DNA of 36,184 nucleotides from Hyphochytrium catenoides (lineage: Eukaryota > Protista > Hyphochytriomycota), in assembly GCA_900088475.1 (NCBI GenBank), contig FLMG01000615.1:1-36184 (forward strand), given 5' to 3'. How positions within the stretch are numbered: the first letter of the stretch is position 1; each line of letters begins with the position of its first letter. Position numbers and translations under genes: made by a program. Shown here in pieces: positions 402 to 34,830 of this stretch. The notes under the pieces are model-generated. The model saw nothing but the letters and a program-made list of their open reading frames with translations, did not search any database and was not told the origin of the DNA.

Positions 402-459
402 GTAAGTGTTCTCTCCATGTCTTCCTTTCCAGACTCACTCTCTCTTCTCTCTCTTCTCT

Positions 460-499
<40 letters not shown>

Positions 500-570
500 T
501 TCTCTCTCTCATATATTCGATCCAAGAGCTCTTCTTCTGGCCTCTTTCTCTCCTTTCACCGTTCCTGCAG
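402..570 (+). other. Probable 5'-UTR intron of the acyltransferase gene, containing a (CT)n tract
   Basis: GTAAGT donor at 402, CT-rich body, CCTGCAG acceptor ending at 570, upstream of the ATG at 726. Confidence 0.5.
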
Positions 571-725: not shown

Positions 726-3437
726 ATGGGGATAAAAGAGCTTCTGCCCAGGCGGAGGCGATCCTGGAGGCCATACTTGGCAGCAGGTTTGTCCAGATCA
801 GACGTCTACTCCGCTTTCTCCTTCTCTCCCTCTCCCGTCTTGTCTCTCTTGCATCATCCTCGACCGTGTCTTCTCAGTTTACCTTTTACTCCTCTCTCTG
901 TAGCTCTCTCTGCCCCCTTTGTCTCTCTGTCTACTCTGGAGTTGACTTGTGCTTGTCTCGCTCTCTACTTGGACTGTCCGCTCTCCGTCTCCTTTCTCAT
1001 TCTTCGCCCTCGGGCTTCATCCTCTAGGTCTCTATCTCTCTTCTTCTCTCTCTGGCTACTCTCTTCCGTCTGACCCCTTTGTCTGTGCAGCGGTGGTCGC
1101 CTATCTCTCCCGACGCCAGCTGCAGTTCCTGTTCTTCATTCTCTATACGTTTTACCTCTGTGGGCCCTACGCCCTCCTGCAGCCTGACCCCATCAAATGG
1201 TGGGTGCAGCACACCCTCTGGTTCTTAGGCATAAGCCTGAGAAAGAAGGGAGATGTCCCCATTGTGAGGGATCGGAAGGTCATCTTCCTCGCCAACCATC
1301 GCTCTTGGGCAGGTCTGATAGCCTTCAAAACCCTCTCTCCTCTCTCTCTCTAATTTCTCTCTCTTTCTGTCTCCCTTTCTATCTCCCTCTCCCTCCCCCT
1401 GTCTGACTCTTTCCCGTTCTCTGCCTCTTCCTTTCAGTTAATGTCCCTCTCTCTTTCCCTCTGAGAGCCTATGCGGTATGTTTCTTGCTCCTCTTTCCAT
1501 GGCTGGCCAGCGATGTGCTCTGCCCTCATTCCTCTTTAGCCTCGGGACCCTTGGCGGCCTCAGTGATTCAATAAGAATTGGCCTCTCACTCTCACGCTGA
1601 TCTTCGTTCTCTCATCTTTGAAGCCATCTTTCGCGCGCTCGTCGCTATCTCTCGTCCTGTTTCCTCTATCGTCTCCGGCCAGTCTCCTTCATTTCTCTCC
1701 GTGATCGTCTGAGCTCGTCTATGATCTGGAAAAAGGGGAAGTTATATCTAACCTTGCTGCTGGGACAGACTTCTTCCTGCACTTCAGAGTCTTCGAGTTT
1801 GAAAATAACATTGTCTCCAGGTACGCGAGGAGTTCTCTTCCATTAAGTCTTGCCGAGGCATTCGCTACCTCTTTCCTCCCCGTTCTCTTGGTTCTTGTCA
1901 GATCACCTCTCACTCCCCTTTATAAAGAACTTCTCTCTTCGTTGTACCAATGAGCCCTGTCATCTAGTGCATGTTCATTTGCTCCATGCTTCACTGCCGG
2001 CTGCTCTGTCGGTCTCCTCCCCACCTCTCTCTCTCTTTCCCATTCTCTACTTCTATCTCTTCTCTGTCTCACTATCAACCATTGTTCTTAAGCTTTTTGC
2101 TCTTCCTCATACTCGAACTCTCAAGACTCTTCTCTTTGTATCTTAATAGCCTCCTAACGCTTTTTCTCTGCCTCAACCACCGCACGGCTCTCGTCTGTCT
2201 TCTATCGTCTGCCGCTTCCTAGAATGGCAATCGCATTCATCTTTCCCTTTATCTACTGGGGAAGTCGAGTCCACAATGCTGCTTGGTTCTTCCAGCGCGG
2301 TCAACACTCTCTCTCTTGGTTCTATGACTGGCTCGACCAGAACTTCAATGACCCTCGCCTTGCGCGGAAGGGGCTGCTGGTGTACCCTGAAGGCCATAGA
2401 AATCTTAACCCAGACCCTCTGCCTCTCAAGTCAGGAATCATCCGGGTACGAGCGGCCAAGCAAAGTTTGAAGTGGAAGCTTCTGTGTCTGTGACGTGTGT
2501 CGATCGATTCTCCCCTCTTCTTCTTTCATACGCTCCTTACTCTTTCTTGTTAGCTAAGAGCTGTAGTCTCTCTTGCCCTCGGTCTCTACATCTGGTCCCC
2601 TAATCAAAGGAACTACTATCTCTCTCCATCGCTCTTATCTCTGCGTCTCTCTCCCTCTCTTTCTTCCGTTGTTCTCTCTATCTCTCTGTCTTACATCGAA
2701 ACTCTTCTCTTACTATAACTGCGTGCCTTGGCTGCCTCGTCTTCCTGACCTGCCATGGCTGCCTCTTCTCCCTGACTTGCCATGACTGCCTCGTCTCCCT
2801 GGCTTTGACCTCTTTTCTCCTAGCGATGTCGGACGTCCCGCTCATTGTTTTTCTTTACCTAGTTCTCCTACTACGCTGCTCATCTTTCGTCTAAGGTCTG
2901 TACGCGCTTGAAAGTCCCCTCTCTGGCTTCTTTCTCTTCTCTCTTTTGACTTGATCTCCTTCAGTATGCGTACGACAGCAAGATCCCGGTTCAAATTGCT
3001 ATCACAAAGGGTAATGAGCACATTATGAATGAGAAGGCTTTGACCGTCCAGACAGGAGTGAAGGTGAGCAAGTACAGGTCCGGGAAGAAAGCCCAGCATT
3101 TTCGGAACAGAGAGAGAGAGAGAGAAAGAGAGCCAAGGCTGGAGAGAGAGCGACAGAAACAGAGAGACACACACAGATAGAGAGAAGAGGAAAGGAGAAA
3201 GAGGAAGAGACAAGAGGCGTAGAAAGCCGAGATAGAAAGGGCCTAGCGTGGCGCGACTGACCATTACCCATCCAACAGGTAGACTATGAGATATTCGAGC
3301 CAATCTACCCGGAGAACCATAGCACACCTGACGACTTCATTAAGGAGGTGCACAATCGGTTTAACGGTGCATTCCATAAAGTTTTCAAGGGTCAGGAGCA
3401 GCCTAAAGTGATGTCAAAGGAACTTTCTAGGCTATAA
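726..3437 (+). CDS. 1-acyl-sn-glycerol-3-phosphate acyltransferase-like (PlsC/LPLAT family), 6 exons, ~271 aa
   Basis: Phase-compatible GT-AG exons 726-786, 1091-1312, 1769-1820, 2223-2445, 2965-3063, 3279-3437. The spliced product has catalytic block I 'NHRSWADFF' (NHxSxxD, split by an intron), block III 'LVYPEGHR', 'LPLKSG...KIPVQI' and an N-terminal hydrophobic segment. Confidence 0.9.
2724..2804. repeat. 27-bp minisatellite, 3 copies, in intron 4 of the acyltransferase
   Basis: Unit ~tgccatggctgcctcgtctccctgact starts at 2724, 2751 and 2778. Confidence 0.85.
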
Positions 3438-3707: not shown

Positions 3708-5526
3708 TTAGAGTTGCCATAGTTCCTGCTCCTCTGGCATGCCTTCGTCGTTCAATAAGCAGAAGCTGCAGATCGGACATTTCGTACTCTGCCGCAGCCA
3801 CTGAATACGACATAGAGCGTGCATGGCAAGAGCTTAGATTAGCGATGAAGCGACCTCCCAACCTATGCCTTGGAGGTTGCATCTACTTCTCTCCTTTTCT
3901 TTCCTTCTTTCTCTCTCTCTCTCTCTCTCTCCCTATGTGAAAAGGTTGTTCAAGCGGGCGACGTACCTCATCAATGCAGCTTTTGTGATATTTATGAAGA
4001 CAGAATAAAGCCCGCACCAATTCACCGTCTTCAAAGGCTTGACAGCAGACAGCGCATCTACATTAAGTAGAACGAAAGGCATCATGAGTGGACCAAGTCG
4101 TCAGAAGGGCAAGGCAAGGAAGAAGGGGGATAAAGTCTGTGAGGGAAACGAAGAGAAAATAAGAGAAAGAGAAGTGGTCTAGCGAGTGAAGAACAAAAAA
4201 GAGCGCTTATGTAGAAGAGAGAAGGAAAAATAAGCGTACTCTGTATTCTTGTCTTCGCTGTTCTGACGCTTTTCGTATGGAAAGGTTGGCAGAGAACTGA
4301 TCACGCCGATAGAAAGCCCTCCTTGGTCATTCATCTTCGCCATGTCTCGGCTATTTATCTCTTGAATGCGACGAAGCAACCTCAGCAAGCGCTGGCATTA
4401 GAAGAACGAGAGCGAGTGGGTTAGTGCACTCATATCAGAGGAACCGTATCTTCAAAGAGTCAAGGGAAACATGGCGAGAGGAGAGGTAAAGAGAGGCGAT
4501 GATTTGCCCTACCCTTTCCCTTTGAGGAGTTGGAGAGCCGAGGAAGGAGCTTGTTCTGGGTTCACGGAGGAAGGAAGGGCCCATGTGGTCCATTGACAGA
4601 GAGCGGGGCCTGGGAGGTGGTTGTCTTCTGATATTAGAGGGCCGGACCTCCGGAAGAGCTGTCATTCAAACAAGGAATGCAGTCAAAGATCGAAGAGTGA
4701 CATTAGTTTGCTGCATAACGACAGAGGAAAGGCGAGAAGAACAAAAACCAGCGAAAGAGAGAAAACTATGGGTCTGTAGATGAAGCATAGAGAAGAAGAG
4801 AGAAAGAGAGCCATAGAGAGAGAGAAGGGAAGGTTTCTTCGAACCAGGAGTGAAGAGACACCTGAACTCTGTCAGAGGTGGATGTAACCTTCGAGAAATG
4901 CGATTAAGAGTCAGCTGTATAGCAAAGATATTAGTCCTAGGGAAAGGGAAGGAAGAGGAGAGCAGAGAGGCTAAGATACCTTCAATGATTCCATTGGCCA
5001 CCAGCTCATCAATCTGCTCTTGCCTCTCCTGTTCTTCCGTCTCTAGCTCAGAAAAAGCCAAACGTACCAGCTCCTCTGTCTCAGCCGCATACCACTGGGT
5101 CTCGCGTAGGTTAGGCTCCATTATAGGACATATGATGGGTCTCGGTACAGACTTCGCTAAAGTCTTTGGCAATGGCGGATGGAGAGGTTGCTGGTCTTTC
5201 CTCAGAATGGGACGTTTATTCAGGGCCTGCTTTTGGATCTCTTCTCTTTGCTCAGCGAACTCATCACTTTCAAAGAACATCTGTCGATAAATCTCTGTCG
5301 TTGTCTTCTCATCCTCGGTGAACAACGGGTTCACGGGTTCACGGGTCGGGCCGCGCTGCCAGCACAGGAGACATTAACCCACGTCGACGGGAGGGGAAGC
5401 AAGCAATAAAAGAGAAGGGGTAAAAATGAGAAGAGAGAGTGAGAGAGAGAGACAGAGGAAAAGATGAAGGTTTCTCACCAGAAGCCCGCCCTTAGGATAA
5501 AGCCAGCCAGCCAGCCAACCAGGCAT
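3708..5526 (-). CDS. RING-H2 finger protein (putative E3 ubiquitin ligase), 6 exons
   Basis: Phase-compatible exons 5526-5479, 5355-4980, 4658-4513, 4391-4240, 4057-3967, 3800-3708. The C-terminus reads 'ISSLPTFPY...ECAVCCQAFEDGELVRALFCLHKYHKSCIDEWLRQSTKCPIC', a C3H2C3 RING with the conserved Trp. The RING exons are absent from the ORF track; the 5' exons are less certain. Confidence 0.88.
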
Positions 5527-5802
5527 GTTGCTTGAGACAGTCAAGGTGAGCTTGCCACCAGTTCGAGCGTCAACGTGACCTCCTCCTGAGGTTTAGAATC
5601 CCGATGAATGATCTCTAGAGTCTCTGCTGCTTCTCGCCCAACAGCCTGTGGCGAAGCACACTGTCGATAGAACTTTAACCTGTCTTCGCTAATAATGCTT
5701 CCGATGCATCAACAGAGATCTTCTACTCTACTGTACCAGCCTAGGACGTACTCCGAAAACTCTCAGAAAGGTGGGAGATCGCTGAGTAGAAGACTCTAGG
5801 AA

Positions 5803-6046
5803 GTGTTTCTTTCTCTTTTATGTCTCTCCCTCTCTCTCACTCACACTCTCTCTCTCCGTCCTCTCTCTTTCTCTTTTTCTGTCAGACACACCCTCTCTCT
5901 CACACCTCTACCTATCTCTCTCTCTCTCTCTCTCCCTCTCTCTCTCCCCCTCTCTCTGTCCCTCTCTGTCNNNNNNNNNNNNNNNNNNNNNNNNNNNNNN
6001 NNNNNNNNNNNNNNNNNNNNNNNNNNNNNNNNNNNNNNNNNNNNNN

Positions 6047-6108
<62 letters not shown>

Positions 6109-6120
6109 TCCTCTCTGCCT
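5803..6120. repeat. Compound (CT)n microsatellite surrounding an assembly gap (N 5971-6046)
   Basis: CT/CTGT runs flanking 76 Ns. Confidence 0.95.
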
Positions 6121-6857
6121 CATTTCCCGCCCTTCGTCTTTTGCCGATCAGAAGGGTCGAAAAACAGGAGAGTCAAGCGGCTTATTATCGGAAAGGACTA
6201 GGCTCCTTTTAGTTATATCTGCTTTTCGGGGCGGTTAACGATTGAATCAGAAGAGTGTACGAAAGCGCTCCACTGTCCAAGCATTTCTTAGCATGATCGA
6301 ATCACCGCATCTAGAAGCCCTTTCGCCTAATTTGAACTTTGGCCTCTTGGCCCATAAAGTCTCAGGTAGTACGTTATTCTCCTATAGTACTGGCCCATCC
6401 AATTGATTGTAATGGCGATTACATGAATAGTGGCCCGAAGCAAACCGAGCAACCTCTCTCTTATCCATGATGGAGGCAGAATGGCCCCACCCGCCCTCTA
6501 AGTGCACTCGGATAAAGCAACCCTAATCCTCACCCACCCACCCTCCAGTGCCAGTTCCCAAGTAAGATGATTGTCAAATATGTGAGGATGACCTACTAGA
6601 TCCCGCGATGTCAATAATTCTCACTATCACAAACAAGCGTTTAGGGCTTTGTTCTGCGTGCCCTTTGTAAATTGACTAATGGTATTCCGTGGTGCGTGTG
6701 AAGATGTGAAGATAACGTTTCATTGTCGACAATGCAGAGATTTCGGCAAATTACGTATCGGTATGGGCGCTCTCAACGTTTCGAAAATAAAAAAAAAAGG
6801 GGAAAGAAAGAGAGGAAAAGAGGCAGAAGAAGATTGAAGGGGTAGCAGTAATGAGCT

Positions 6858-8629
6858 ATAGAACCTCTGGCGCAGTCTCTCTCTCTTGATTACCTTGAAA
6901 CCAAGTCCTTTCCGTCAGCTCTCATACCAACATGGAAAAACGTTGAGATTGTGCCTGACCTACTACGAGATGGAACGTGGAAACGTCCTTTGACGGCCAA
7001 TATACCATTCAACAGCTTGCCATAGTGAAGACATCACTGGCAGCTCTAAGACTAAAGCAGGGCGATAGAAGGCGCGAATTAAAGCCGACAAATCCCAACA
7101 CTATACAAGGAAAAATCATGATTTTGAGCTTCACTTCGCTTTGACCGACTTCTCATGGCCAGCGCTTCTAAATTATCACAGTCGGATTCTTAAGGCGGTC
7201 CAAAACAATGTTACAGGGATGACACAGGCGCCTCTAACAGCCCATATTCGAGATACAGGGACGGTGCTTTCTTACTGTGGCCATGACACTAGGGCCCAAG
7301 TGGACAGCACTACTAATGATCGACACGAGAATAACAAGACGATGCTTTGTGGTGATGATGAATCTGTACTTCAGTCTGCAAGTATTCTGTGAATAACAAT
7401 AAAGATTTTGCTACCCCACGGCCCTCAGAAGCTAGAACTAGGGACGATGGATAGGTCTGTTGCCCCACCGGTCCTCAAGCTGTTCTCGTCTGCTGAAGGT
7501 TTCGGTAAGACTAGAGGAAGGCTAATCATCTATGCTCATCATCCGTCTTCAAAAATGATGGTTAATTTGGAACTTACAGGCAACTGGCCCTTGTCCTTAT
7601 AGATTATTGAAAATATTTGCCAAAGAAGTTAGGGAAAGAGCTCTCTTTATGAATGAAGGGGTTGACTTAGCCTAAACAAGGCTCCTTGAAGTACACACAT
7701 TCTGATGGATGACAGTGTGGTTGGACGCTGTTCTGGAATGAAAAAAGAGGAGGATGAGTTTACTATAGATTATAAACTTGAGGCGATATCCATAAGCTAT
7801 TGATTCCAGAAGTATTTTGGGGACTAACTATGCAAAGCTATCAGATGATATGCAAGAAATTGTGAGAAAGCAGAGGGATAAAAAAGCTCTAAATAGTAGA
7901 GCCACCGAGACTGAAGCGAGAGTGATACTACCTCATCGAATAAATAGTTGCCAAGAGATGACTTTGTCACAGAAGAGATTCGGCATTGATGGCCAAGCGG
8001 AAGACATTTAAAGGAAGTCCGAAAGAGGAAAGTCTTTTAGTACAGGCACCAAGTTTCTAAGCGAATTAAGGACAGTCAACGTAGGCCATGAAGTGGATGG
8101 TTCCTTCTTATCATAAGAGATAAAAAAAGTAGAAAAAGAAGAGAAAGATACGAGTCAACAATAATCAACCTTAAAGGAAGGCAGGAAGCTGGTGCCTACT
8201 CGAACGAAGAAAAGCAAGGAGGAAACAGGCTCTTTCATTCCTGACACACATTTGGGCGATACTAATAGTGGCAGTGACTAGGAGCAAGCCAAGCAGTTTG
8301 AGAGCGAAAAAAACATGGTCAGATACCATTATGATGGAGAAAGCAACGCGATGAAATGTTATTAACGGACTTAGTAGGTCGGCAAGTTGACCAGAACAAA
8401 AAGCAGGAAACATTAAAGAGGAACACGTGAGTCATGAGAAGAAATGAAGAAGCCATTTCTGCCTAGGAAGTCTGTCAAAGGGATAAGTGGAGCATTAGGT
8501 TACCAGTTAATAACACCTCAAGACTTTATCGCAAGAAATATACAGAAGAAGAACAACAGGAAGCAAACCTTCTTGATATTGGCCTGGGATGTCACAATAA
8601 CCCATCCTGTGCTTATTGATATAGGGTAG
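6858..8629 (+). pseudogene. Decayed reading frame(s), possible P-loop NTPase remnant
   Basis: ORFs 7141-7392 and 7408-7602 share one frame that stays protein-like from ~7022 to ~7630, broken only by isolated stops; contains 'LFSSAEGFGKTR' (Walker A-like). Further fragments at 7817-8011 and 8444-8629. No family recognised. Confidence 0.3.
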
Positions 8630-8879
8630 TCTTCTCCAGGCAACTTTCCTCGTATATTAGGTGATACTCACCTCCTACGCTGCTGCGGTGGCGTCAGTGG
8701 TGAGCATATTTGAGGGTATTATAGACAGATGTTAGATGTGCAATAATGGTCAGGGTCTGCTATCCTTCTTGAGTAAAATTGGGGCGATACGAACTCCAAC
8801 ATTTGATAGCAGTGAGATTAATAGAGCTGTAGTAGATTGACCGGTGGCAACAGATACATACTTGAGATCACTTATCTAC

Positions 8880-11800
8880 TTATCTGCTCACCTGATCATG
8901 AGGCGTGCCATCCTGCCGCTGCCTCCAGTCTGCCAGCAAATTTTTGCAAGTTTCGCAGTCGCATTCTGCCGATTCCTTGTACCGTTGAGTTCCTCCAGTT
9001 CTACCCCATAATGCATCGTCATTCCGAGGTGCGCGTTGCTCCTCTGGGACTTGACAGGGTGACGACCCCTGGCGGACTTGAACCCCAAAGCGGTGCATGT
9101 CCTTCCACGTCCCAAGAGTAAGGTAGTGCCCACACTTACCGCACCTCCTTGGTAGCTTGGCCTTCCTGGTCCGACGTCTAGGTGCTCTCCTCTGTTCTTC
9201 TGCTGCCGTCTCAGCATCATCTTCAACACGAGGCCTCTTTTGTCCCCCAAGAAGAGCCTGATATTGTGCTTCTCTATTTCCACGAGCCTTCGCTAAAGCT
9301 TCGCCACTAGCTGGGAGATCTCGAATCAACTCTGCAGAACCTCCTGGAGCTTCCTCCCCAGTATCAGGTATGAATAGGTTGCCTTCTTCTCCTTCCTCTA
9401 CGACGAGATACACTGTAGCGTCAGGAAAATCAGGGGCTTCTGTCATGTTTGACGTACTTAGTCCTTTTTGAGCTTCATGGTGTGAGATGGTCCTTGCGAG
9501 AGTTCTCCGGATGTTCTCCCGACTCAAGTACTCAGTGAAGTACGCCTTAAGCAGGCCTGGTGTCTTAGGGTATGTCTCTTTGCCTCTTGCTGCGTCTTGA
9601 TGCAGGGATTGATTCCACCACCTGGCAAACTCCTCGGCGTCTAACCGCACTAGGTTTGGAAGCCGATGTGACTGGCGAGTAGGACGAAAGGACAGAAAGG
9701 AGCCCTCTTTAAGCTTCTCGTCAAACTTTCTCTTTTCATCCTCGGTTCGCACTGGCCTTGGCAAAAGATATACGCCGGTGGGATCTTGGGGAAGATGTTG
9801 GAGCTGAACTCTAACCTCTTGGAACAGAAGATTCTCTTCTCCGATGTGAAAAGGATCCATCACATGGTTGCCTACCCCTCCGGCAACGGGCAAGGCAGGG
9901 CCTGCATTTGGACCTTGTCCTCTGGGGGCATTCACATTTGTGGGATTTATGACATACTCCATATTCTCCTGACTTTCCCTGATGAAAGCTGTCCCTTTCC
10001 AGTCCTGGAATAGCCGATCTGTCGGGCGCTGGTAGAAACCATGGCTCAATATCTGCATTTCTTCTACCATATGGACTTCTGAGAACCCTTGATAGCGTGA
10101 GCTTAGCTTTCCTACCTTGACCATGGCGTTTAGATTCCATCGAAAATCAAACTCTCGAAGACAGAGAATAGCCACCTTGTGGTGCAGCGGTTGCCATCTA
10201 GGAGTCGACGCAAGTGCTTATGATAGCCCTCAAGATCGCTTGTCCCACGGCAGCATCTAAAAGTAGGAATGCCCCTAGAGTCAATGGCCAATCTAATGTA
10301 GAGCTGCACATCTTCGAGGTCGGAGATGCATCCCTGTAGGGCGTGCTCTTTGAGCAAAGCAAACGCCAACCGAGCCTCTTGACTAAAAAGCGGTTTCAGC
10401 GTAGCTGCATCCACAACGTCCTCCATTGCCTATGAGGGGAAAAGGAAAGGATCGTAAGGCACCCAAATTGAAGTACAAGTACGACTAGAAGATCTGAAGA
10501 ATGGCAAGGACTAACCTTCCCTATTTTGTCTAGCCTGCGGTATAGCTGCGGTGGAGGAGGAATGATTCTACGGACACGATCGAGAAAATAGCTGTAGTCT
10601 TCCTTGTACATCTTCTCCACTTCTGCATCAGTTTTCCCTGAACGGATTAGAAGCCTTTTGATAACGTCAATATCCCCTCTGTTAGGGATATAGATTGCAT
10701 CGCGTAGAAGAGCCATGAAGGTGGGTTTTGCGCCGTGTCCACTTGATAGCATTGTCTCAATCCTTTGGAATAAATGCAGGCAATCTTGTTTGACCCGATT
10801 GAAGTCTGCTTGCCCCATGGGCTGCGGAATCACGCCATCGTCCTCGGCTGGCCTAAAGTCCTCTGGCAAATGATCGAGGAACTCTAGCTCGGGGTCTGTC
10901 ATTCGTCCGTGATCTTCGGCTGGTTCATGCGCTGGCTCCTGCACTGGCTCCCCACGCGGCTGGTTTGGATTGGCCTGACCAGGGAAAGCGTCTGGGTTTC
11001 TTCTTTCCGCGTCATGATACTGGTGGCGTAGGACTCGCACTCTAGAGAGAGGCCACATACTAAGATACTTTCTCTTTCAATTTCCTCAACCGTGAGATTT
11101 TGGGCCGCATACAATGGTAGGATGGCGTTAGGGCACCGTGACTTGACTACCTTAGCCAGCACAACCTCCCTTAGCTCAGCTGCAAGATTACGTCTCAATA
11201 TCTCCGGAATGTCGCGGAACCTTCTATTGCCTGGACCTCTTGTACATCTGCCTCGAGAGGTGCCTGGCGGTCGTGGCCTTCGTCAGCTGGTAGGTCGACA
11301 AAGAGCTCTGCATCCGCGACGTGTCGGTTTCCTACAAGATCATAGAGCTGAACAATTTGTCTCTGCTGCTGTATCTCCAGGACCTGTTCGACTGTCAGAG
11401 GAACGACTTCCATGTCTTTCAGCGCCAAATGAAGTGCAAGCCCCGCATACAAGTCAAGGGCTAGCGCCTCCAGCTGCATTTGAGACAACGATCCTTCACT
11501 CCAAGCGCTGCAAATCACCTCCCTTGGCACAATGTAAGAGCAGTGCAATAGCTCTAGAAAGGCTTGTTCTAGGTTATATCCTCGTCGACGGGCGACAGAA
11601 GTGACATCTAGAAGAGATCTCATCTCCATACCGTGGTCAGCCTTTAAATAGTTGGCGTGGCGAGTAAGGTCCAGTCCCACCTTCACCACATCCGGATTCT
11701 CTATGACGGTAATCCTAAGATGCTCTAACAAGTGCGCACTCAACATTGAAAGTCGAATGACCGCAACCCTGTATGCCGAATCCCGATGATTATTGACCGC

Positions 11801-14073
11801 ATTTTCCCCTCCTTGTAAAGAATTGCCGATGAGGAGAGCTATCACTGATACTTTGGGCCTTGAGCCACGAACAACAATGTCCCATTTGACCGTTAGGCCT
11901 ATTGTTATCAGTCGTCGCCGCGACCGTTCTGCGAGTTGATTGCATACTTCATAAACCTGCAGTTCATTGACCAGCTCGGAAGTTGAAGTTAACAGGCCTG
12001 GTGGCAGTTCCACACCGCCTGTTTGAGGTCTGCGATTCCTCTCTGCCTCCTCTCTAACTGCCTGTGGGTCGTCAAAAAAGACTCTGTTCCAGAGCGGGGC
12101 ATCACTGTAACGAAATGTTGTATATTAGTTCTCCTCACGGTCCCGCAATTGACAAAATGTTACCTGCAGCAGTTGTCGACATACACTGCTTGTACAGTCA
12201 TATTCTCTCGGCCCTTCAAGCCCTTCAAGAAAGGCTCATACTCCTCATGGGTCCCCTTGGAAGGAGTCAAGAGGTGATTTAAGACAACTCCGTCTTCATT
12301 CATGACAGTATAGAGTTCTTTCCCGTATTGGGAGCCTCCAAGATACAGCTTCTTCGCAAACTTGAAGTTGCCATCGGCCTTTAGCACCTAAGATAACATG
12401 CTTAAGTTAGCAGCTACTCATTGATACGGATCGTCTGTCCTAGTTACCTTCCCTCCATGTTGCTGTTGTTGCTTCTTTAGGAAGAGTTCCCGACTCTGAA
12501 GGTCCAACTCTGCAACCGTGCTAAGGTAGAAGACACTTGGTAGCTTCCCACAATAGTGCTGAGGATCAGTCCAGTCTTCTGACCACTTAATCGGATTCTG
12601 GGCAAGAGCTCTCGCTCCAAGCATCATGTTATCGTCATCACTTGCCCGACTACAAGCCACTGCAGATGCCCATATAGTGCCGCTTCTGATCCACTTATTC
12701 TTGTAGCGATCGCGCAATACCCTTTGATACGCAGCCACTCCCCCAAGCGATGGGTCTCCCATAAAGAGACGAAGCTCTCTAACGGCATTCAGGTCTATTC
12801 CTGCTCGATAGGTCAGGAGCGCGGGGAAAAGTCTTCTCACATGAAGAGGCAATTGATCAAGAACGCCGGAATCATATCCATTAAAAGTGCGACCCCCACA
12901 TCTTTCACTACTGCACTTGTACCTCCGACAAGTGAGATAGTACCAGTCATCGAGGCCAAAGATGGTCCTCGGGAACTGCAATTGAACGCCAAGAACGAAT
13001 AATGTGAGTGTAGGGACGCAAACCCTCGCTTCGATTAACTCTCATTTGCTCACATACCTTCGCACTCCAGCCCTCGTTGGTCACATGATGGTTGTCTTTA
13101 CAAAACGGACAGGGTGGGACTCCAGATGGAAAGTCCTCTGGAAGAACACATTCCGGCCACCAGAGAAATATCGGCCGTTTGTAGTAGTTGGGAGGATTGA
13201 GTGCTCTGCCTTCAATACCAGGGGCTACGAAGGGATGAGGGGGATCAATGATGAAAAGTTCCCTATCTATTAGGCCCAGCCATTTAGATCTTCGGTCGGG
13301 ATCATTTGCTTGAATTCCTCTCACCTTGGCCATTTTAGCCATCACCCATGGCCCGTTCACGGAGCTTTGAGCCCCTGTAAAGGCATTACGGCGAGTTGCC
13401 TGCTGTCTCTCCCTGCCCCTTTCCCCATGCGGACCAGCCGCACCATCTCTGATCTCACGGTCTCCTCTACCAAGCCTACCACGTCGCTCGCCACCATCCA
13501 TAATATCGCCTATGCGGGCGTCCGCTGCTCCCGCATCATCCTCTTCGTTTCCGTCACCCCAAGGCCCTTCCTCCCTTCCGTTGTCTAGGCATACTTCTCC
13601 GTCATACTCTTCAAGATTATCAGGAGTCCGTCCATTTACTCCGTTCATACCCTCCAGAACCTCTCTATGCAACGCTGGCGGGTTTTGCGCTCCAACATCC
13701 GCAACAGCGACATACGCATCTTCGGGGTTAGCGCCTATTTATGAGCAGGACATGGTGGTAGATGCAGTGATCAGATAGATGATGATGGTGCAACGATGTA
13801 GCATTATCACAAGCTCTTCTCCAGCGATCAAAACAATGCCAGTGGATTTGTGGGATTCTGACCTGGCGGTAAATCCTGCTGCGGGTCTCTATCCGGTCCC
13901 CCATGATGTCCCCTTTGCGGTTGGGGCTGGAAGTCTTCATCGGCGCCAATGATAGCAGCTGCTGCAAGGCCTCTGCGATGCTCTAGCTCTTGGCGCTGGC
14001 GACGGACTGGACACGTGCGCTTATTATGTCCTTGCTGATGGCAGACGCCACAGTGCTGATTCAACCTTGTCAT
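8880..14073 (-). mobile_element. Intron-containing DDE transposase gene (DxxH-type, Mutator/ISL3-like motif order, DUF6729-like Cys domain) with inserted 3'-5' exonuclease-like domain; probably disrupted
   Basis: Phase-compatible GT-AG introns at 13735-13862, 12976-13057, 12388-12447, 12105-12163 and 10430-10515 join the minus-strand ORFs. Motif order: CCHC knuckle 'CGVCHQQGHNKRTC'; Cys domain 'FLWWPE...CPFC...RTIFGLDDWYYLTCRRYKCSSERC...LDQLP'; D1 'VLKADGNFK'; 'LYTVMNEDG'; D2 'YVDNCC'; exonuclease fold; 'QDCLH'; 'RGTSDLEGYHKHL'; C-terminal Cys/His cluster. Frameshift near 10178 and unresolved junctions at 11042-11220. No TIR/TSD found by eye. Confidence 0.8.
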
Positions 14074-16076
14074 CCTCCAGCCACCCTATTTGTAAAGTTA
14101 TCCGTTGAAAGAGAGTAAGCAGAAGGAGCAGGTAAGAGGATGCGATGATGATAGAAGAGTTTGAGATCCTACATCAGTAAGAAAGCAAGCGGACAACGCA
14201 ACAACAGACGATAGAAGAAGCTTTTGCTTGGCTTCGATTGCATTCAATGTCTTGCATCTTCTGACTTTCTTCTTGTTGCCAGGTGAAGAAGCAGTGACAG
14301 TGACAATAAAGTAATCTTTTTTATTAGCCTTTATAAGGCATGCAGCAGTAGCAGCAGCAGCAGTTCAGTAGTGCACCAAATTGTATTCAAGCTCTGCGAA
14401 TGGGCTCTAAAGCCGTCTCTAGATACTGCTCCTCCTTCTGTCATCGGAAAAGCTGGAGAAGGAGAGGGGGAGCAAAGATCTTTCGAACCAGCTGTAGGCT
14501 CATCCAGCATGCTTTATATCCTAGATTTGTCGTGTCATAATTTGGGAGAGTATCCACCTGTATCATTCTGAGTGCCATTTATATAGAATATATACGTAAG
14601 TGTTAGCCCGTCATTTTGTTACCAGTTTCATCAAACATGAATTCCTGGATCTAGTGCACGTAGCTGTACAGGTTCATCTATTGTACTAGGCCAATACCAT
14701 ATCGGCATGCCACTTTGACGTTTGGTAATGACTCAGGCCGTACCGATGAAGCAACTCCCGAGATTTCTGCAGTTTGTCTGCAGTCTGGTCCTGAAAAGTT
14801 TGAAGAGTCACAAGCTTGGTCACAAGACGAAGCTTTGTCCCGATGACAATGGTGCAGGAAGCAGACAACAGACAACCCTGTCCATACAAGCTGATCGGCG
14901 AAGGTCCTGGAGGATAGTAGAATTGTGGGCATTGAAGGAAGGTGCTGGGCACCTTTGAGACCCAGCCTGCTGATAGAGAAGGAGTTTATCTTAAATGCCG
15001 TAGAGCTTCAGGAAGATACTGCCGTGAAGGATCTCCATGCCTTTTTAAAAGAAGGTAGGTGATGGCTAACGCCAAGCGGCAGCAGGGTTCATGCGAACTC
15101 AAAGCTAGCTCATTACTACTGCGCGTACTGAGGTGCCATTAGTGAGTTTGACCACGCCATGAGTCTAATCGTGATACCCTCAATAGCGGACACGTCATAG
15201 AGGATTGAGCTTCTAACTGTAAAGAAGGGCATTTCTCTGTAGTCAGAGTCTACTCTCAGCAATACTCTATTATTTAGTGAAGGGTTGTCTCAATTCTTGG
15301 TATCTACCGTTGCGTCGGTGCAGCCCTAGTCACAGCACCTGGGAGACCTGATGAGGTCGTCAATGGTGCTTGGACGATGTGGGCCACAAGGGCCGAGATG
15401 AGGGGGCTGTAAGAACGTATAGTAACAATTACATCAGCCTAAAGAATGATACTATCAAACTAGAAGAGAGCTGACAAGATAATAAGCCTGTTAGGAGGCA
15501 CTATAAAACGACAGCGCTTGGCAACTATGAGAACGGGCTTTCACCTGAGTTAGCCATCTGCATAGTCCTTGACGGTACAGGTGACCGGCTACCAACGCAA
15601 GTTGACGGACAAGTAACGATAGAAGAAACGTTGAGACCGTGGTTTGAGCTCGAACCTGCCACATGCAGCTCCAAAACGTCTACATAGCACTCAACATCGT
15701 TAGATCCGTCCGAGTGATCTAGATAGAGAAGCGCAAGGAATGTAAACTCAAGAGGGTCATATGTCACATCCAAATGACGTCTCAGCGTCAACCTATTCCC
15801 TGCGTACTTTCTGAAAGGAGGCTGCTGGTGTACAGACCCATACATTATTAGAGATAGAGGCCAATTCATGAGCCAGAAGGCTAAGATCTACATCGCTCAG
15901 AGCGATCGACAGAGGAATAATTTATAGTCATTTCAAATAAATAAAAAAAAGGGTAAACACCCTGACAGCACATAGAGAAGCACTTCCTCTAATGAAGTGT
16001 GGGCTTGGTGACAGTCCCGCTCCCAGCAGCCAGAACTCTACTGCTCCGTTGTGAGAGCCTATCAGCCTGCTGAGAT

Positions 16077-24023: not shown

Positions 24024-24989
24024 AAGCCTTCAGAGCCTGGCTCTGCCTCTCCCGATAGCAAGCCTATCTCTTTCTATCCCGAATGGGCAAGTCCTTACTT
24101 CCACCTTCTTTCTTCCTCCTCTCTCTGCTTTCATTCTCATCGTTCCACGCCGGTTTGTTGGGCGGTGGTTGAAAACTGTATGAGTGCGAGGTCCCGCTTG
24201 TATATCTTTAAGTTCTACTCTGTAATTTATGGCGGGTCAGCTGTGGCAGTCAAGCTGTTGCCGTCTCCACATCTTGAGCTTTTTATATGCATTGTTCTTC
24301 CTCTGAAATCGCATCTTTCCAGTGCAACGCTTACTTAAGCTGCCACTCGCCGACAATCGGTCGGGCCCGCTAGATTATTAGGCAGGAGTGAGTCAGAATA
24401 AGAGATGAACACGCAACATTAGAGTCTGGCAAGCATGTCGCTCTCTCCCGATATTTCATGTCCGCTTGGTAGACAACACGCAGTTGCCAACCAGGGGCGC
24501 TTTGTCTACCATTTTCTGTTTCTTTCTCTCTGTCCCTGATTCCTATCTACCTCCCCACCAGCTTTCCATCATAAAAACGCGCTCAGTCTTTCGCCTACAT
24601 CCTGGTCCCCGTCAGAGAGAAGAGATGATGTAACAGTTCCGCTGTGCCTGTCGGAACGCTTCAGCATACGATGGTCGTCCTTGTACCTGTACCAGAACAG
24701 TGCCTCGGTCGTTACATTTGTTTGGGCACACATAGCCGATGAGCCCAGCAGAAGCTCAGGAACTATTCGGCTCCCATCAGAGCGCATGTTAGATTGATGA
24801 CAGAAGTGCTTGTGAGTGGCCTTTGCTCACCTCTGATGCATCACTTCATGGGCAAACAATTGGTTCGCTGCCTTTAGGTCCTAGAGAGAACTACTTCCTA
24901 GTACTCCAGAGCAAGCTCGAGAGTGTCTATGTGCTCGATGTTGTTTGGCCTTCACCTTTGGTCCTGCATCAGCAGAGTCTTTGACTCCT

Positions 24990-25003
24990 CACTCTTTTCT
25001 TTC

Positions 25004-25034
<31 letters not shown>

Positions 25035-25098
25035 CCTCTCTCCCTCTCTCTCTCTTCCTCTCTTCCTCTCNNNNNNNNNNNNNNNNNNNNNNNNNNNN

Positions 25099-25130
<32 letters not shown>
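24990..25130. repeat. (CT)n microsatellite with assembly gap (N 25071-25098)
   Basis: CT runs flanking 28 Ns. Confidence 0.95.
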
Positions 25131-25132
<2 letters not shown>

Positions 25133-25365
25133 TCTTATGGTCTCAGGCCAATTTCCAGTTCTAAACGTCTAAAACAGAAAAGATCCAGATCCCCCTACCT
25201 GTCATAAAATGATGAACCGAAAGTAATTGTGATGGGGGAAGATCACTGTCCTTCTGAAAGGACAATTTACACACTCCCGAGAATAGGCTGACTTTTGGGT
25301 CTGACTTTCGGTTTTCTCCCTGTCTTTCCTGCCTGTCTCCTCGTACAGATGTCGCTTCGTACAGT

Positions 25366-25380
25366 AGAGAGAGAAAGAGT

Positions 25381-25471
<91 letters not shown>

Positions 25472-25520
25472 GAAAGACAGAGAGACAGAGAGAGAGAGAG
25501 AGAAAGGAAGGAGAGAGATG
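25366..25520. repeat. (GA)n compound microsatellite
   Basis: GA/GAAA/GACA runs. Confidence 0.95.
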
Positions 25521-25854
25521 TCAAGAGAGGAGCTGTTGTACGATAGTCGTCAGCTTCGCATCAGGCGATCGCGGGCTTTACGACTGTCCCGTCCCTCCTG
25601 CTGCCCGCAAAGCTTTGGCGTCAGTCCTTTGTCCTCCCCTGCACCATCCTTCTGAGGGGCGGTTGTGCGCCTTTGACAAGCATCTCTGATAGCAGCCCTT
25701 TTCCACATTTACTCTTTCTCTCTCTTCATTCTCTCCTCCCTCTTCTCCTCCCTCGCTTCCTGTTCTCTGTCTGGTTATGCTTTTACTCACACCTAGTCCT
25801 ATGACCTAGGAGACCTCCCTCTCCCTTTCACTCTGTCTCTCCGTCCATGGGAAG

Positions 25855-34547: not shown

Positions 34548-34674
34548 TTCTGTGGGTCTCTCTCTCGCTGTCTCTCTCTTTCTTTCTCTCTTTCTCTCTC
34601 TCTCTGTCTCTCTCTGTCTCTCTTTTCTCTCTCTCTGTCTCTCTGTCTCTCTGTCTCTCTGTCTCTCTGTCTCC

Positions 34675-34720
<46 letters not shown>

Positions 34721-34830
34721 CTCTCTCTTTCACTCTCTCTTTTGCTCTTCCTGTCTGGGTTTCCCAACCACTTTCTTCTGTCAGTCTCTGCGTCTCCACC
34801 ACCTTGCCTCTCTCTCTCTCTGTCTCTGAG
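34548..34830. repeat. Compound (CT)n/(CTCTCTGT)n microsatellite
   Basis: Long CT and CTGT runs upstream of the last gene. Confidence 0.95.

Follow-up and report, generated by a model that had tools for sequence, protein, structure and literature searches.

Does an exonuclease domain that has lost its catalytic residues still serve the transposase in which it lies? This question is raised by a gene on the minus strand of the window, by which we mean the whole stretch of 36,184 nucleotides (positions 1 to 36,184 of contig FLMG01000615.1, Hyphochytrium catenoides, GenBank assembly GCA_900088475.1). At ~8880-14073, a series of open frames with short gaps between them encodes a DDE transposase of the Dada superfamily, which has an RNase-H fold and a DxxH motif and is related to the IS256, MuDR and hAT types. 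Between the second catalytic Asp of this transposase (YVDNCC, 12166-12183) and its DxxH motif (QDCLH, 10774-10788) lies a block resembling the exonuclease of WRN, at the place where the sequence-only reading of this DNA had put it. As detailed below, a once-active Dada exonuclease was probably inactivated in one lineage and kept there as a part of the transposase that is structural or DNA-binding and no longer catalytic, the window copy itself being young and probably dead.

The block is contained in the open frame 11195-12103 (minus strand). It matches the Pfam profile PF01612 (DNA_pol_A_exo1) with an E value of 0.0062 and 16.8 bits, under the gathering score of 23.6: the profile match that had been predicted from the sequence was found, but below threshold. 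A sequence search of the PDB returned the WRN exonuclease (2e6l, E 0.0016). With a family-specific hidden Markov model (HMM) made from five intact homologues (the paralogues C236, C949 and C1406 from the same genome, and the proteins P0001 and P0002), the block scored 43.7 bits (E 1.8e-13) over an envelope of 11378-11986, which encloses the interval 11415-11910 proposed earlier. As the equivalent blocks of C236, C949 and C1406 match PF01612 strongly (E 1.6e-16, 7.4e-16 and 5e-13, respectively), this family HMM score makes the homology of the window block secure despite its sub-threshold Pfam match. The AlphaFold2 model of positions 11342-12013 (minus strand) had a predicted local distance difference test score (pLDDT) of 89 and a predicted template-modelling score (pTM) of 0.82. 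Foldseek placed the WRN exonuclease first (2fbx, E 2.9e-11; 2e6l, template-modelling score, TM, 0.65/0.77), which is the structural match that the sequence-only reading expected; EXD2, Nibbler, RNase D and RRP6 came later in the list, and the TM scores to the WRN exonuclease were 0.62-0.77 overall. Judged on this predicted structure, the DnaQ/WRN fold of the window block is real.

The DEDDy positions were read after hmmalign to the family-specific HMM, and are given here with the domain that contains them:

11378-11986, minus strand: WRN/DnaQ-fold exonuclease-like domain with dead catalytic sites (T-K-H-A-D), from the family-specific HMM envelope, AlphaFold2 and Foldseek
11882-11899, minus strand: ExoI motif GLTVKW (family consensus G-x-D-x-E-W); Asp is Thr (11891-11893) and Glu is Lys (11885-11887)
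11657-11683, minus strand: ExoII motif KVGLDLTRH (family consensus KVG-x5-D); Asp is His (11657-11659)
11453-11470, minus strand: ExoIII motif EALALD (family consensus Y-A-A-x-D); Tyr is Ala (11465-11467) and Asp is unchanged (11453-11455)

The window domain thus has T-K-H-A-D in place of the Asp-Glu-Asp-Asp plus Tyr set, and each substitution is exactly the one that had been read from the letters. On this sequence evidence the domain is a homologue of the DEDDy family to which the label of active exonuclease should not be applied.

The same five positions, compared among the paralogues of this genome, read as follows:

C236, C949 and C1406 (intact group): D-E-D-Y-D
Window (C1563; dead group): T-K-H-A-D
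C4255 (dead group; contig-truncated): ?-?-H-Y-D
C2358 (dead group): A-Q-L-F-N
C272 (dead group; at a contig end): D-K-L-?-?

In an exonuclease-domain tree of 146 sequences, the window copy, C4255, C2358 and C272 form one clade with a support of 0.983. The ExoI Glu and the ExoII Asp are missing in every clade member that covers the position, and the other three positions vary among members; a shared loss with a variable remainder fits an early inactivation followed by drift at residues that had become irrelevant. Being common to the closest paralogues, the substitutions are not decay of the window copy alone, which the sequence-only reading had recognised as the danger to its proposal. All the transposase catalytic sites recovered for the clade are intact: in the order of the two Asp, the exonuclease, the DxxH and the Glu-His sites, the window copy reads DD / TKHAD / DH / EH and C2358 reads DD / AQLFN / DH / EH, and 71 relatives read DD / DEDYD / DH / EH. 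C2358 (2969-8444) is the most complete dead-site paralogue, and its 1134-codon frame (5040-8444) reads through the dead domain.

Synonymous sites between the dead-site loci are saturated (proportion of synonymous differences, pS, 0.77-0.85), whereas the proportion of nonsynonymous differences (pN) is 0.35-0.52 in the exonuclease block and 0.34-0.38 in the DUF6729 and Glu-motif exons. Raw pS and pN are used here, as the dN/dS ratios of NG86, LWL85 and YN00 are not estimable at saturated synonymous sites. In a tblastn comparison, C2358 and the window exonuclease block matched with an E value of 1.6e-15. Since the block is still alignable by tblastn, the C2358 frame is open, the window sequence folds confidently and pN is below the saturated pS, we conclude, as far as such comparisons can tell, that the exonuclease fold has been under purifying selection for a non-catalytic purpose, with some relaxation.

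Several observations weigh against this conclusion. (i) The branches of the dead-site clade are 2.1-2.6 long, more than the family median of 1.8. (ii) No module of the clade is less conserved than the exonuclease block, at 28% identity compared to 43-61% in the remaining exons; in the intact lineage, too, this block comes last, by a smaller margin, and constraint in the dead clade is relaxed relative to intact lineages. (iii) With saturated synonymous divergence, constraint on the block is argued only qualitatively. (iv) The alignment behind the AlphaFold2 model of the window block consisted mostly of intact homologues. (v) The window copy is broken by two frameshifts. (vi) Neither convincing inverted terminal repeats nor a target-site duplication was found in the window, and the same is true of a small-RNA-gene insertion target: no tRNA gene was found and no Rfam family reached the gathering score. 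Dada elements have target-site duplications of 6-7 bp and insert into multicopy small-RNA genes (tRNA, U1, U6, 5S), although this last preference has been shown only for Dada families with definable termini and does not define the superfamily (PMC3706591).

The two frameshifts of the window copy were located by comparison with its sister copy C3105 and with the family frame:

11055-11059, minus strand: private 1-nucleotide deletion at ~11057, between ESILV and WPLS
10178-10182, minus strand: private 1-nucleotide deletion at ~10180 (ACCACC to ACCAC), 16 codons past the catalytic Glu

C3105 and the wider family are in frame at both sites, and the window copy is probably young and recently inactivated, unless the deletions are assembly errors. 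C3105 (698-5033) shares window positions 6744-11467 with 88-97% identity; it carries deletions, an inverted segment and its own stop codons, and is further decayed than the window copy. These features, together with the longer branches of the clade and the rapid evolution of the exonuclease block, would also be seen if the dead-site loci were simply transposon copies degenerating neutrally, the block being without function in all of them, and several copies lie on contigs so short that their integrity cannot be judged. However, the losses are common to loci that differ at 47-72% of the block residues and whose synonymous sites are saturated, and yet the block remains alignable, open and foldable. 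The frame of C2358 runs uninterrupted over its full length, and neither the window copy nor C2358 has a change in the DDE, DxxH or Glu-His sites, which a uniform decay would not have spared. Plain decay therefore fits the window copy and not the clade, for which we consider it unlikely. The earlier description of the domain as a retained module stands in the same way for the lineage, which kept fold and coding capacity across saturated synonymous divergence, and fails for the window copy, with its two frameshifts.

A profile of C236, P0001 and P0002 was run against 1.84 billion representative proteins and gave 9,478 matches at E <= 1e-3, of which 274 were at E <= 1e-30. Nearly all of the best 150 of these 9,478 relatives, which have members in Phascolomyces articulosus, Amanita phalloides and Pyropia yezoensis, carry the exonuclease domain, and about 90 of the 150 also carry the C-terminal core with the DxxH motif and the catalytic Glu. 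The D-E-D-Y-D set is present in 125 of the 156 exonuclease domains of these 150 relatives, most of the others being merely truncated, and the exonuclease is intact in about 90% of the relatives with full coverage. Across 50 full-length relatives, no change is seen at D2, at three exonuclease positions (the Glu of ExoI and both residues of ExoIII, Tyr and Asp) or at the Asp and His of the DxxH motif; conservation is 90% or more at D1, at the Asp of ExoI and that of ExoII, and at the catalytic Glu. The nuclease sites are thus about as conserved as the DDE sites of the transposase, which argues that the exonuclease is an integral working part of these Dada transposases. A capture specific to the window copy, as the sequence-only reading had imagined, is excluded: a large branch of the Dada family has inherited the domain from its common ancestor and carries it as a standard, normally active module, which is intact in C236, C949 and C1406. 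Nor is the architecture new, since Kojima and Jurka had already described Dada elements with a DEDDy exonuclease that lies behind the second Asp and ahead of the DxxH motif (2013, PMC3706591), and suggested that it trims 3' DNA ends during transposition. Word-based protein searches gave no match for the 1134-aa frame of C2358 and two Logan proteins only for the C236 frame. Among the relatives, P0006 (3352 aa) has three consecutive complete Dada units, and every unit includes both an exonuclease domain and a C-terminal core; the gene model was probably joined across insertions lying in tandem, an arrangement that has been reported for some Dada families (PMC3706591).

The sequence of events that we consider probable would start from a catalytically active WRN-like exonuclease module of a Dada transposase, presumably engaged in the trimming of 3' ends. 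In one monophyletic lineage (the window copy, C4255, C2358 and C272), the two metal-binding residues, the ExoI Glu and the ExoII Asp, would have disappeared at an early stage, and the remaining catalytic residues would then have been lost stepwise, the domain fold and the transposase sites recovered in the window copy and C2358 being kept. The surviving domain would most likely serve the transposase in a structural or DNA-binding capacity, with no catalysis of its own.

In a different scenario, the dead-site loci, or at least C2358, would be host genes derived from transposons, in which the inactive fold binds a nucleic acid or a partner in the manner of EXD1 or Egalitarian. At the DNA level C2358 is present in a single copy, and its long frame is intact; the window locus shows neither terminal repeats nor small-RNA-gene targets, cyprinoid fish have a domesticated Dada gene, dDada (PMC8869645), and the inactive EXD1 (5fiq, Z 19.0) and Egalitarian are among the structural neighbours of the fold. 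But dDada has lost the Asp residues of the transposase, whereas none of the DDE, DxxH and Glu-His sites has been lost here. Moreover, the window element has a decayed second copy at another locus with which it shares 2.1 kb of non-coding flank, as expected of a transposon, and four divergent dead-site lineages coexist with intact-exonuclease lineages in one genome. Domestication is possible for C2358; as an explanation of the dead-site loci it appears improbable.

A further earlier proposal was that the inactive domain, by binding DNA ends or small RNAs, shields the element from host defence. This idea draws only on an analogy, as inactive DEDDy folds such as EXD1 act in small-RNA pathways and the fold is similar. 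The domain, however, lies inside the catalytic core and derives from the module that most fully covered relatives keep intact, and this location and descent point to a role in the chemistry of transposition itself; a counter-silencing or end-protecting function is very improbable. If the preferred explanation, a non-catalytic part of the transposase, is carried further, Dada elements with a dead exonuclease could still be functional, the former nuclease serving as a module for DNA-end holding or assembly, or the exonuclease activity being borrowed in trans from the intact lineages of the same genome. We hold this extension to be distinctly unlikely. Were it true, recurrent loss, in the dead-site lineage and in Amanita phalloides, would represent a repeatable change in the mechanism of transposition. 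The A. phalloides protein P0031 (KAK2467285.1) is an independent case: it has two tandem exonuclease-like domains, both reading G-E-S-H-N, and keeps D1, D2 and DxxH. Its tandem domains may be an artefact of the gene model.

The exons of the window were searched one by one, each separately, and the gene is composed as follows, all features being on the minus strand:

13828-14073: candidate first exon with a CCHC knuckle (CGVCHQQGHNKRTC at 14011-14052), a putative assignment, the same feature occurring in paralogues
13055-13354: N-terminal exon with the CPFC half of a zinc finger (13100-13111), by homology
12448-12990: exon encoding the DUF6729 region and the remaining zinc-finger half (CRRYKCSSERC, 12898-12930), from PF20499 (E 7.1e-10) and tblastn of relatives
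12447-12388 and 12163-12105: GT-AG introns on either side of the D1/D2 exon, canonical, of 59-60 nucleotides, with CTAAC-like branch sites
12165-12387: exon with the transposase D1 (KADGNFK, Asp at 12373-12375) and D2 (YVDNCC, Asp at 12175-12177)
10513-11058: exon with the DxxH motif and the start of the alpha-helical insertion domain of the transposase
10181-10426: exon with the catalytic Glu motif RCCRGTSDLEGYH (Glu at 10229-10231)
8880-10175: C-terminal region of the transposase, open over 431 codons and out of frame with the upstream exon, with a Cys/His cluster at 9054-9143

A Pfam scan of the candidate first exon gave no match. The two introns have GTAAC 5' sites and are short, in a fungus-like style.

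In the definition of Kojima and Jurka (2013, PMC3706591), Dada elements have a DDE triad, the second Asp of which is followed by a DxxH motif, and many introns. In the window gene, D1 (KADGNFK), D2 (YVDNCC) and the Glu of DLEGYH all fall on near-invariant family columns, and QDCLH aligns to the invariant D621/H624 columns. The N-terminal CCCC zinc finger consists of CPFC and of the C-x4-C in CRRYKCSSERC, for which the family consensus is CPxC...RYxCxxC, so that the spacing of the second Cys pair departs from this consensus. The C-terminal CCHC zinc finger (CGKC...H...C, 9054-9143) lies downstream of a frameshift. Likeness to published Dada elements was compared by motif: VDNCC, RC-x-RGTN-x-x-E and SDPxG...PLYY occur in Dataset S1 of PMC3706591, and the rows LVVGLDTEW, ILKVGRN...D and QYAALDAWASL of its Figure S1 agree with the consensus of 50 relatives, in which the motifs are VVGxDxEW, KVGxxxxxD, YAAxDA, VDNCC and RGTNxxE. 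A KDZ or CACTA transposase was excluded, as it had no Pfam support and the motifs match Dada. A literature search on 'DUF6729' found no paper.

The position of the insert in the transposase fold was examined on an unspliced relative, P0033, rather than on the window protein. Its AlphaFold2 model has a pLDDT of 78, mostly above 90 in the core. Residues 422-601 superpose on the mouse WRN exonuclease (Z 27.5, root-mean-square deviation 1.4 A, 36% identity), and residues 118-811 superpose on the ISCth4 transposase of the IS256 family (6xg8; Z 12.6, 333 residues aligned), this second match running across both sides of the exonuclease insert; the match to the PFV (retroviral) intasome subunit 4bac has a Z of 9.7. 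Foldseek of the full-length model gave exonuclease matches alone, and the transposase fold surfaced only in an exhaustive structure search. In P0033, D334 is on the first strand and D400 just past the fourth, the exonuclease spans 422-605, the DxxH motif (621-624) begins an all-helical region and E770 is on the following helix. According to this model, the layout is the usual arrangement of DDE transposases with an insertion domain, and the exonuclease would have been inserted after the strand and helix of the second Asp, ahead of the alpha-helical insertion domain that starts at DxxH.

Among known systems, Dada-1_LB and Dada-2_LB of Laccaria bicolor and Dada-1_ES of Ectocarpus siliculosus (PMC3706591) share with the window element D1, D2 (VDNCC), DxxH and RGT(N/S)xxE-G-x-H, N- and C-terminal zinc clusters, a multi-intron gene, and a DEDDy-fold domain likewise inserted between D2 and DxxH. 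Compared to these published exonuclease-bearing elements, the losses in the window lineage amount to three to five of the five DEDDy residues. The WRN exonuclease (2fbx, 2fbt, 2e6l; PF01612) has the same fold, intact family members being 34-36% identical to it with a Z of 27.5, whereas the window domain is without the ExoI Asp and Glu, the ExoII Asp and the ExoIII Tyr, falls below the Pfam gathering threshold, and is embedded in a transposase and not fused to a RecQ helicase. EXD1 (5fiq) and Egalitarian (9rvy) are DnaQ folds with substituted catalytic residues (Z 19.0 and 16.1 to the family model), but they are free-standing host proteins of RNA pathways, and no specific sequence relationship to the window family was found. 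KolobokD (PMC9587614) belongs to another eukaryotic DDE transposon superfamily that recruited a DnaQ-fold exonuclease; this one is of the DEDDh type (TREX/ERI1-like) and is listed as an accessory protein, not as a core insert. The dDada gene of cyprinoid fish, a domesticated Dada-U6 gene (PMC8869645), is also Dada-derived and retained after the loss of catalytic residues; these were the Asp residues of the transposase, whereas the window lineage lost the sites of the embedded exonuclease with the transposase sites intact.

The unusual feature is not the architecture but a lineage without exonuclease catalytic residues in which the fold is kept. Nuclease-dead lineages that keep this fold and the transposase sites represent a natural separation-of-function experiment, suggest a structural or DNA-binding role of the domain besides catalysis, and provide matched active and dead exonucleases in one genome for biochemical comparison. 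Otherwise, the outcome is a correct annotation, that of a Dada transposon copy which is probably dead, and no new kind of system.

Outside the coding region, one boundary of the shared DNA was mapped, from the single partial sister copy C3105:

6744-8879, minus strand: non-coding 3' part of the repeated unit (2.1 kb), common with C3105 at 87.5% identity

The similarity ends sharply at window position ~6744 (AAATTACGTATCGG...), and the flanks are unrelated on the two contigs; from this alignment, the element may have one of its ends at ~6744. Immediately upstream of the gene, a segment of about 250 bases (14503-14760) has 78-79% matches on contigs C4401 and C806, and may be an unrelated short repeat or the 5' region of the element. 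Downstream of the intact-exonuclease Dada gene of C236, a 417-codon open frame (1639-2889, minus strand) had no Pfam domain at E <= 0.01. Low-complexity purine/pyrimidine-rich repeats are present at window positions 434-510, 5800-6120, 24980-25530 and 34550-34830, and at the contig end of C3105 (5068-5455).

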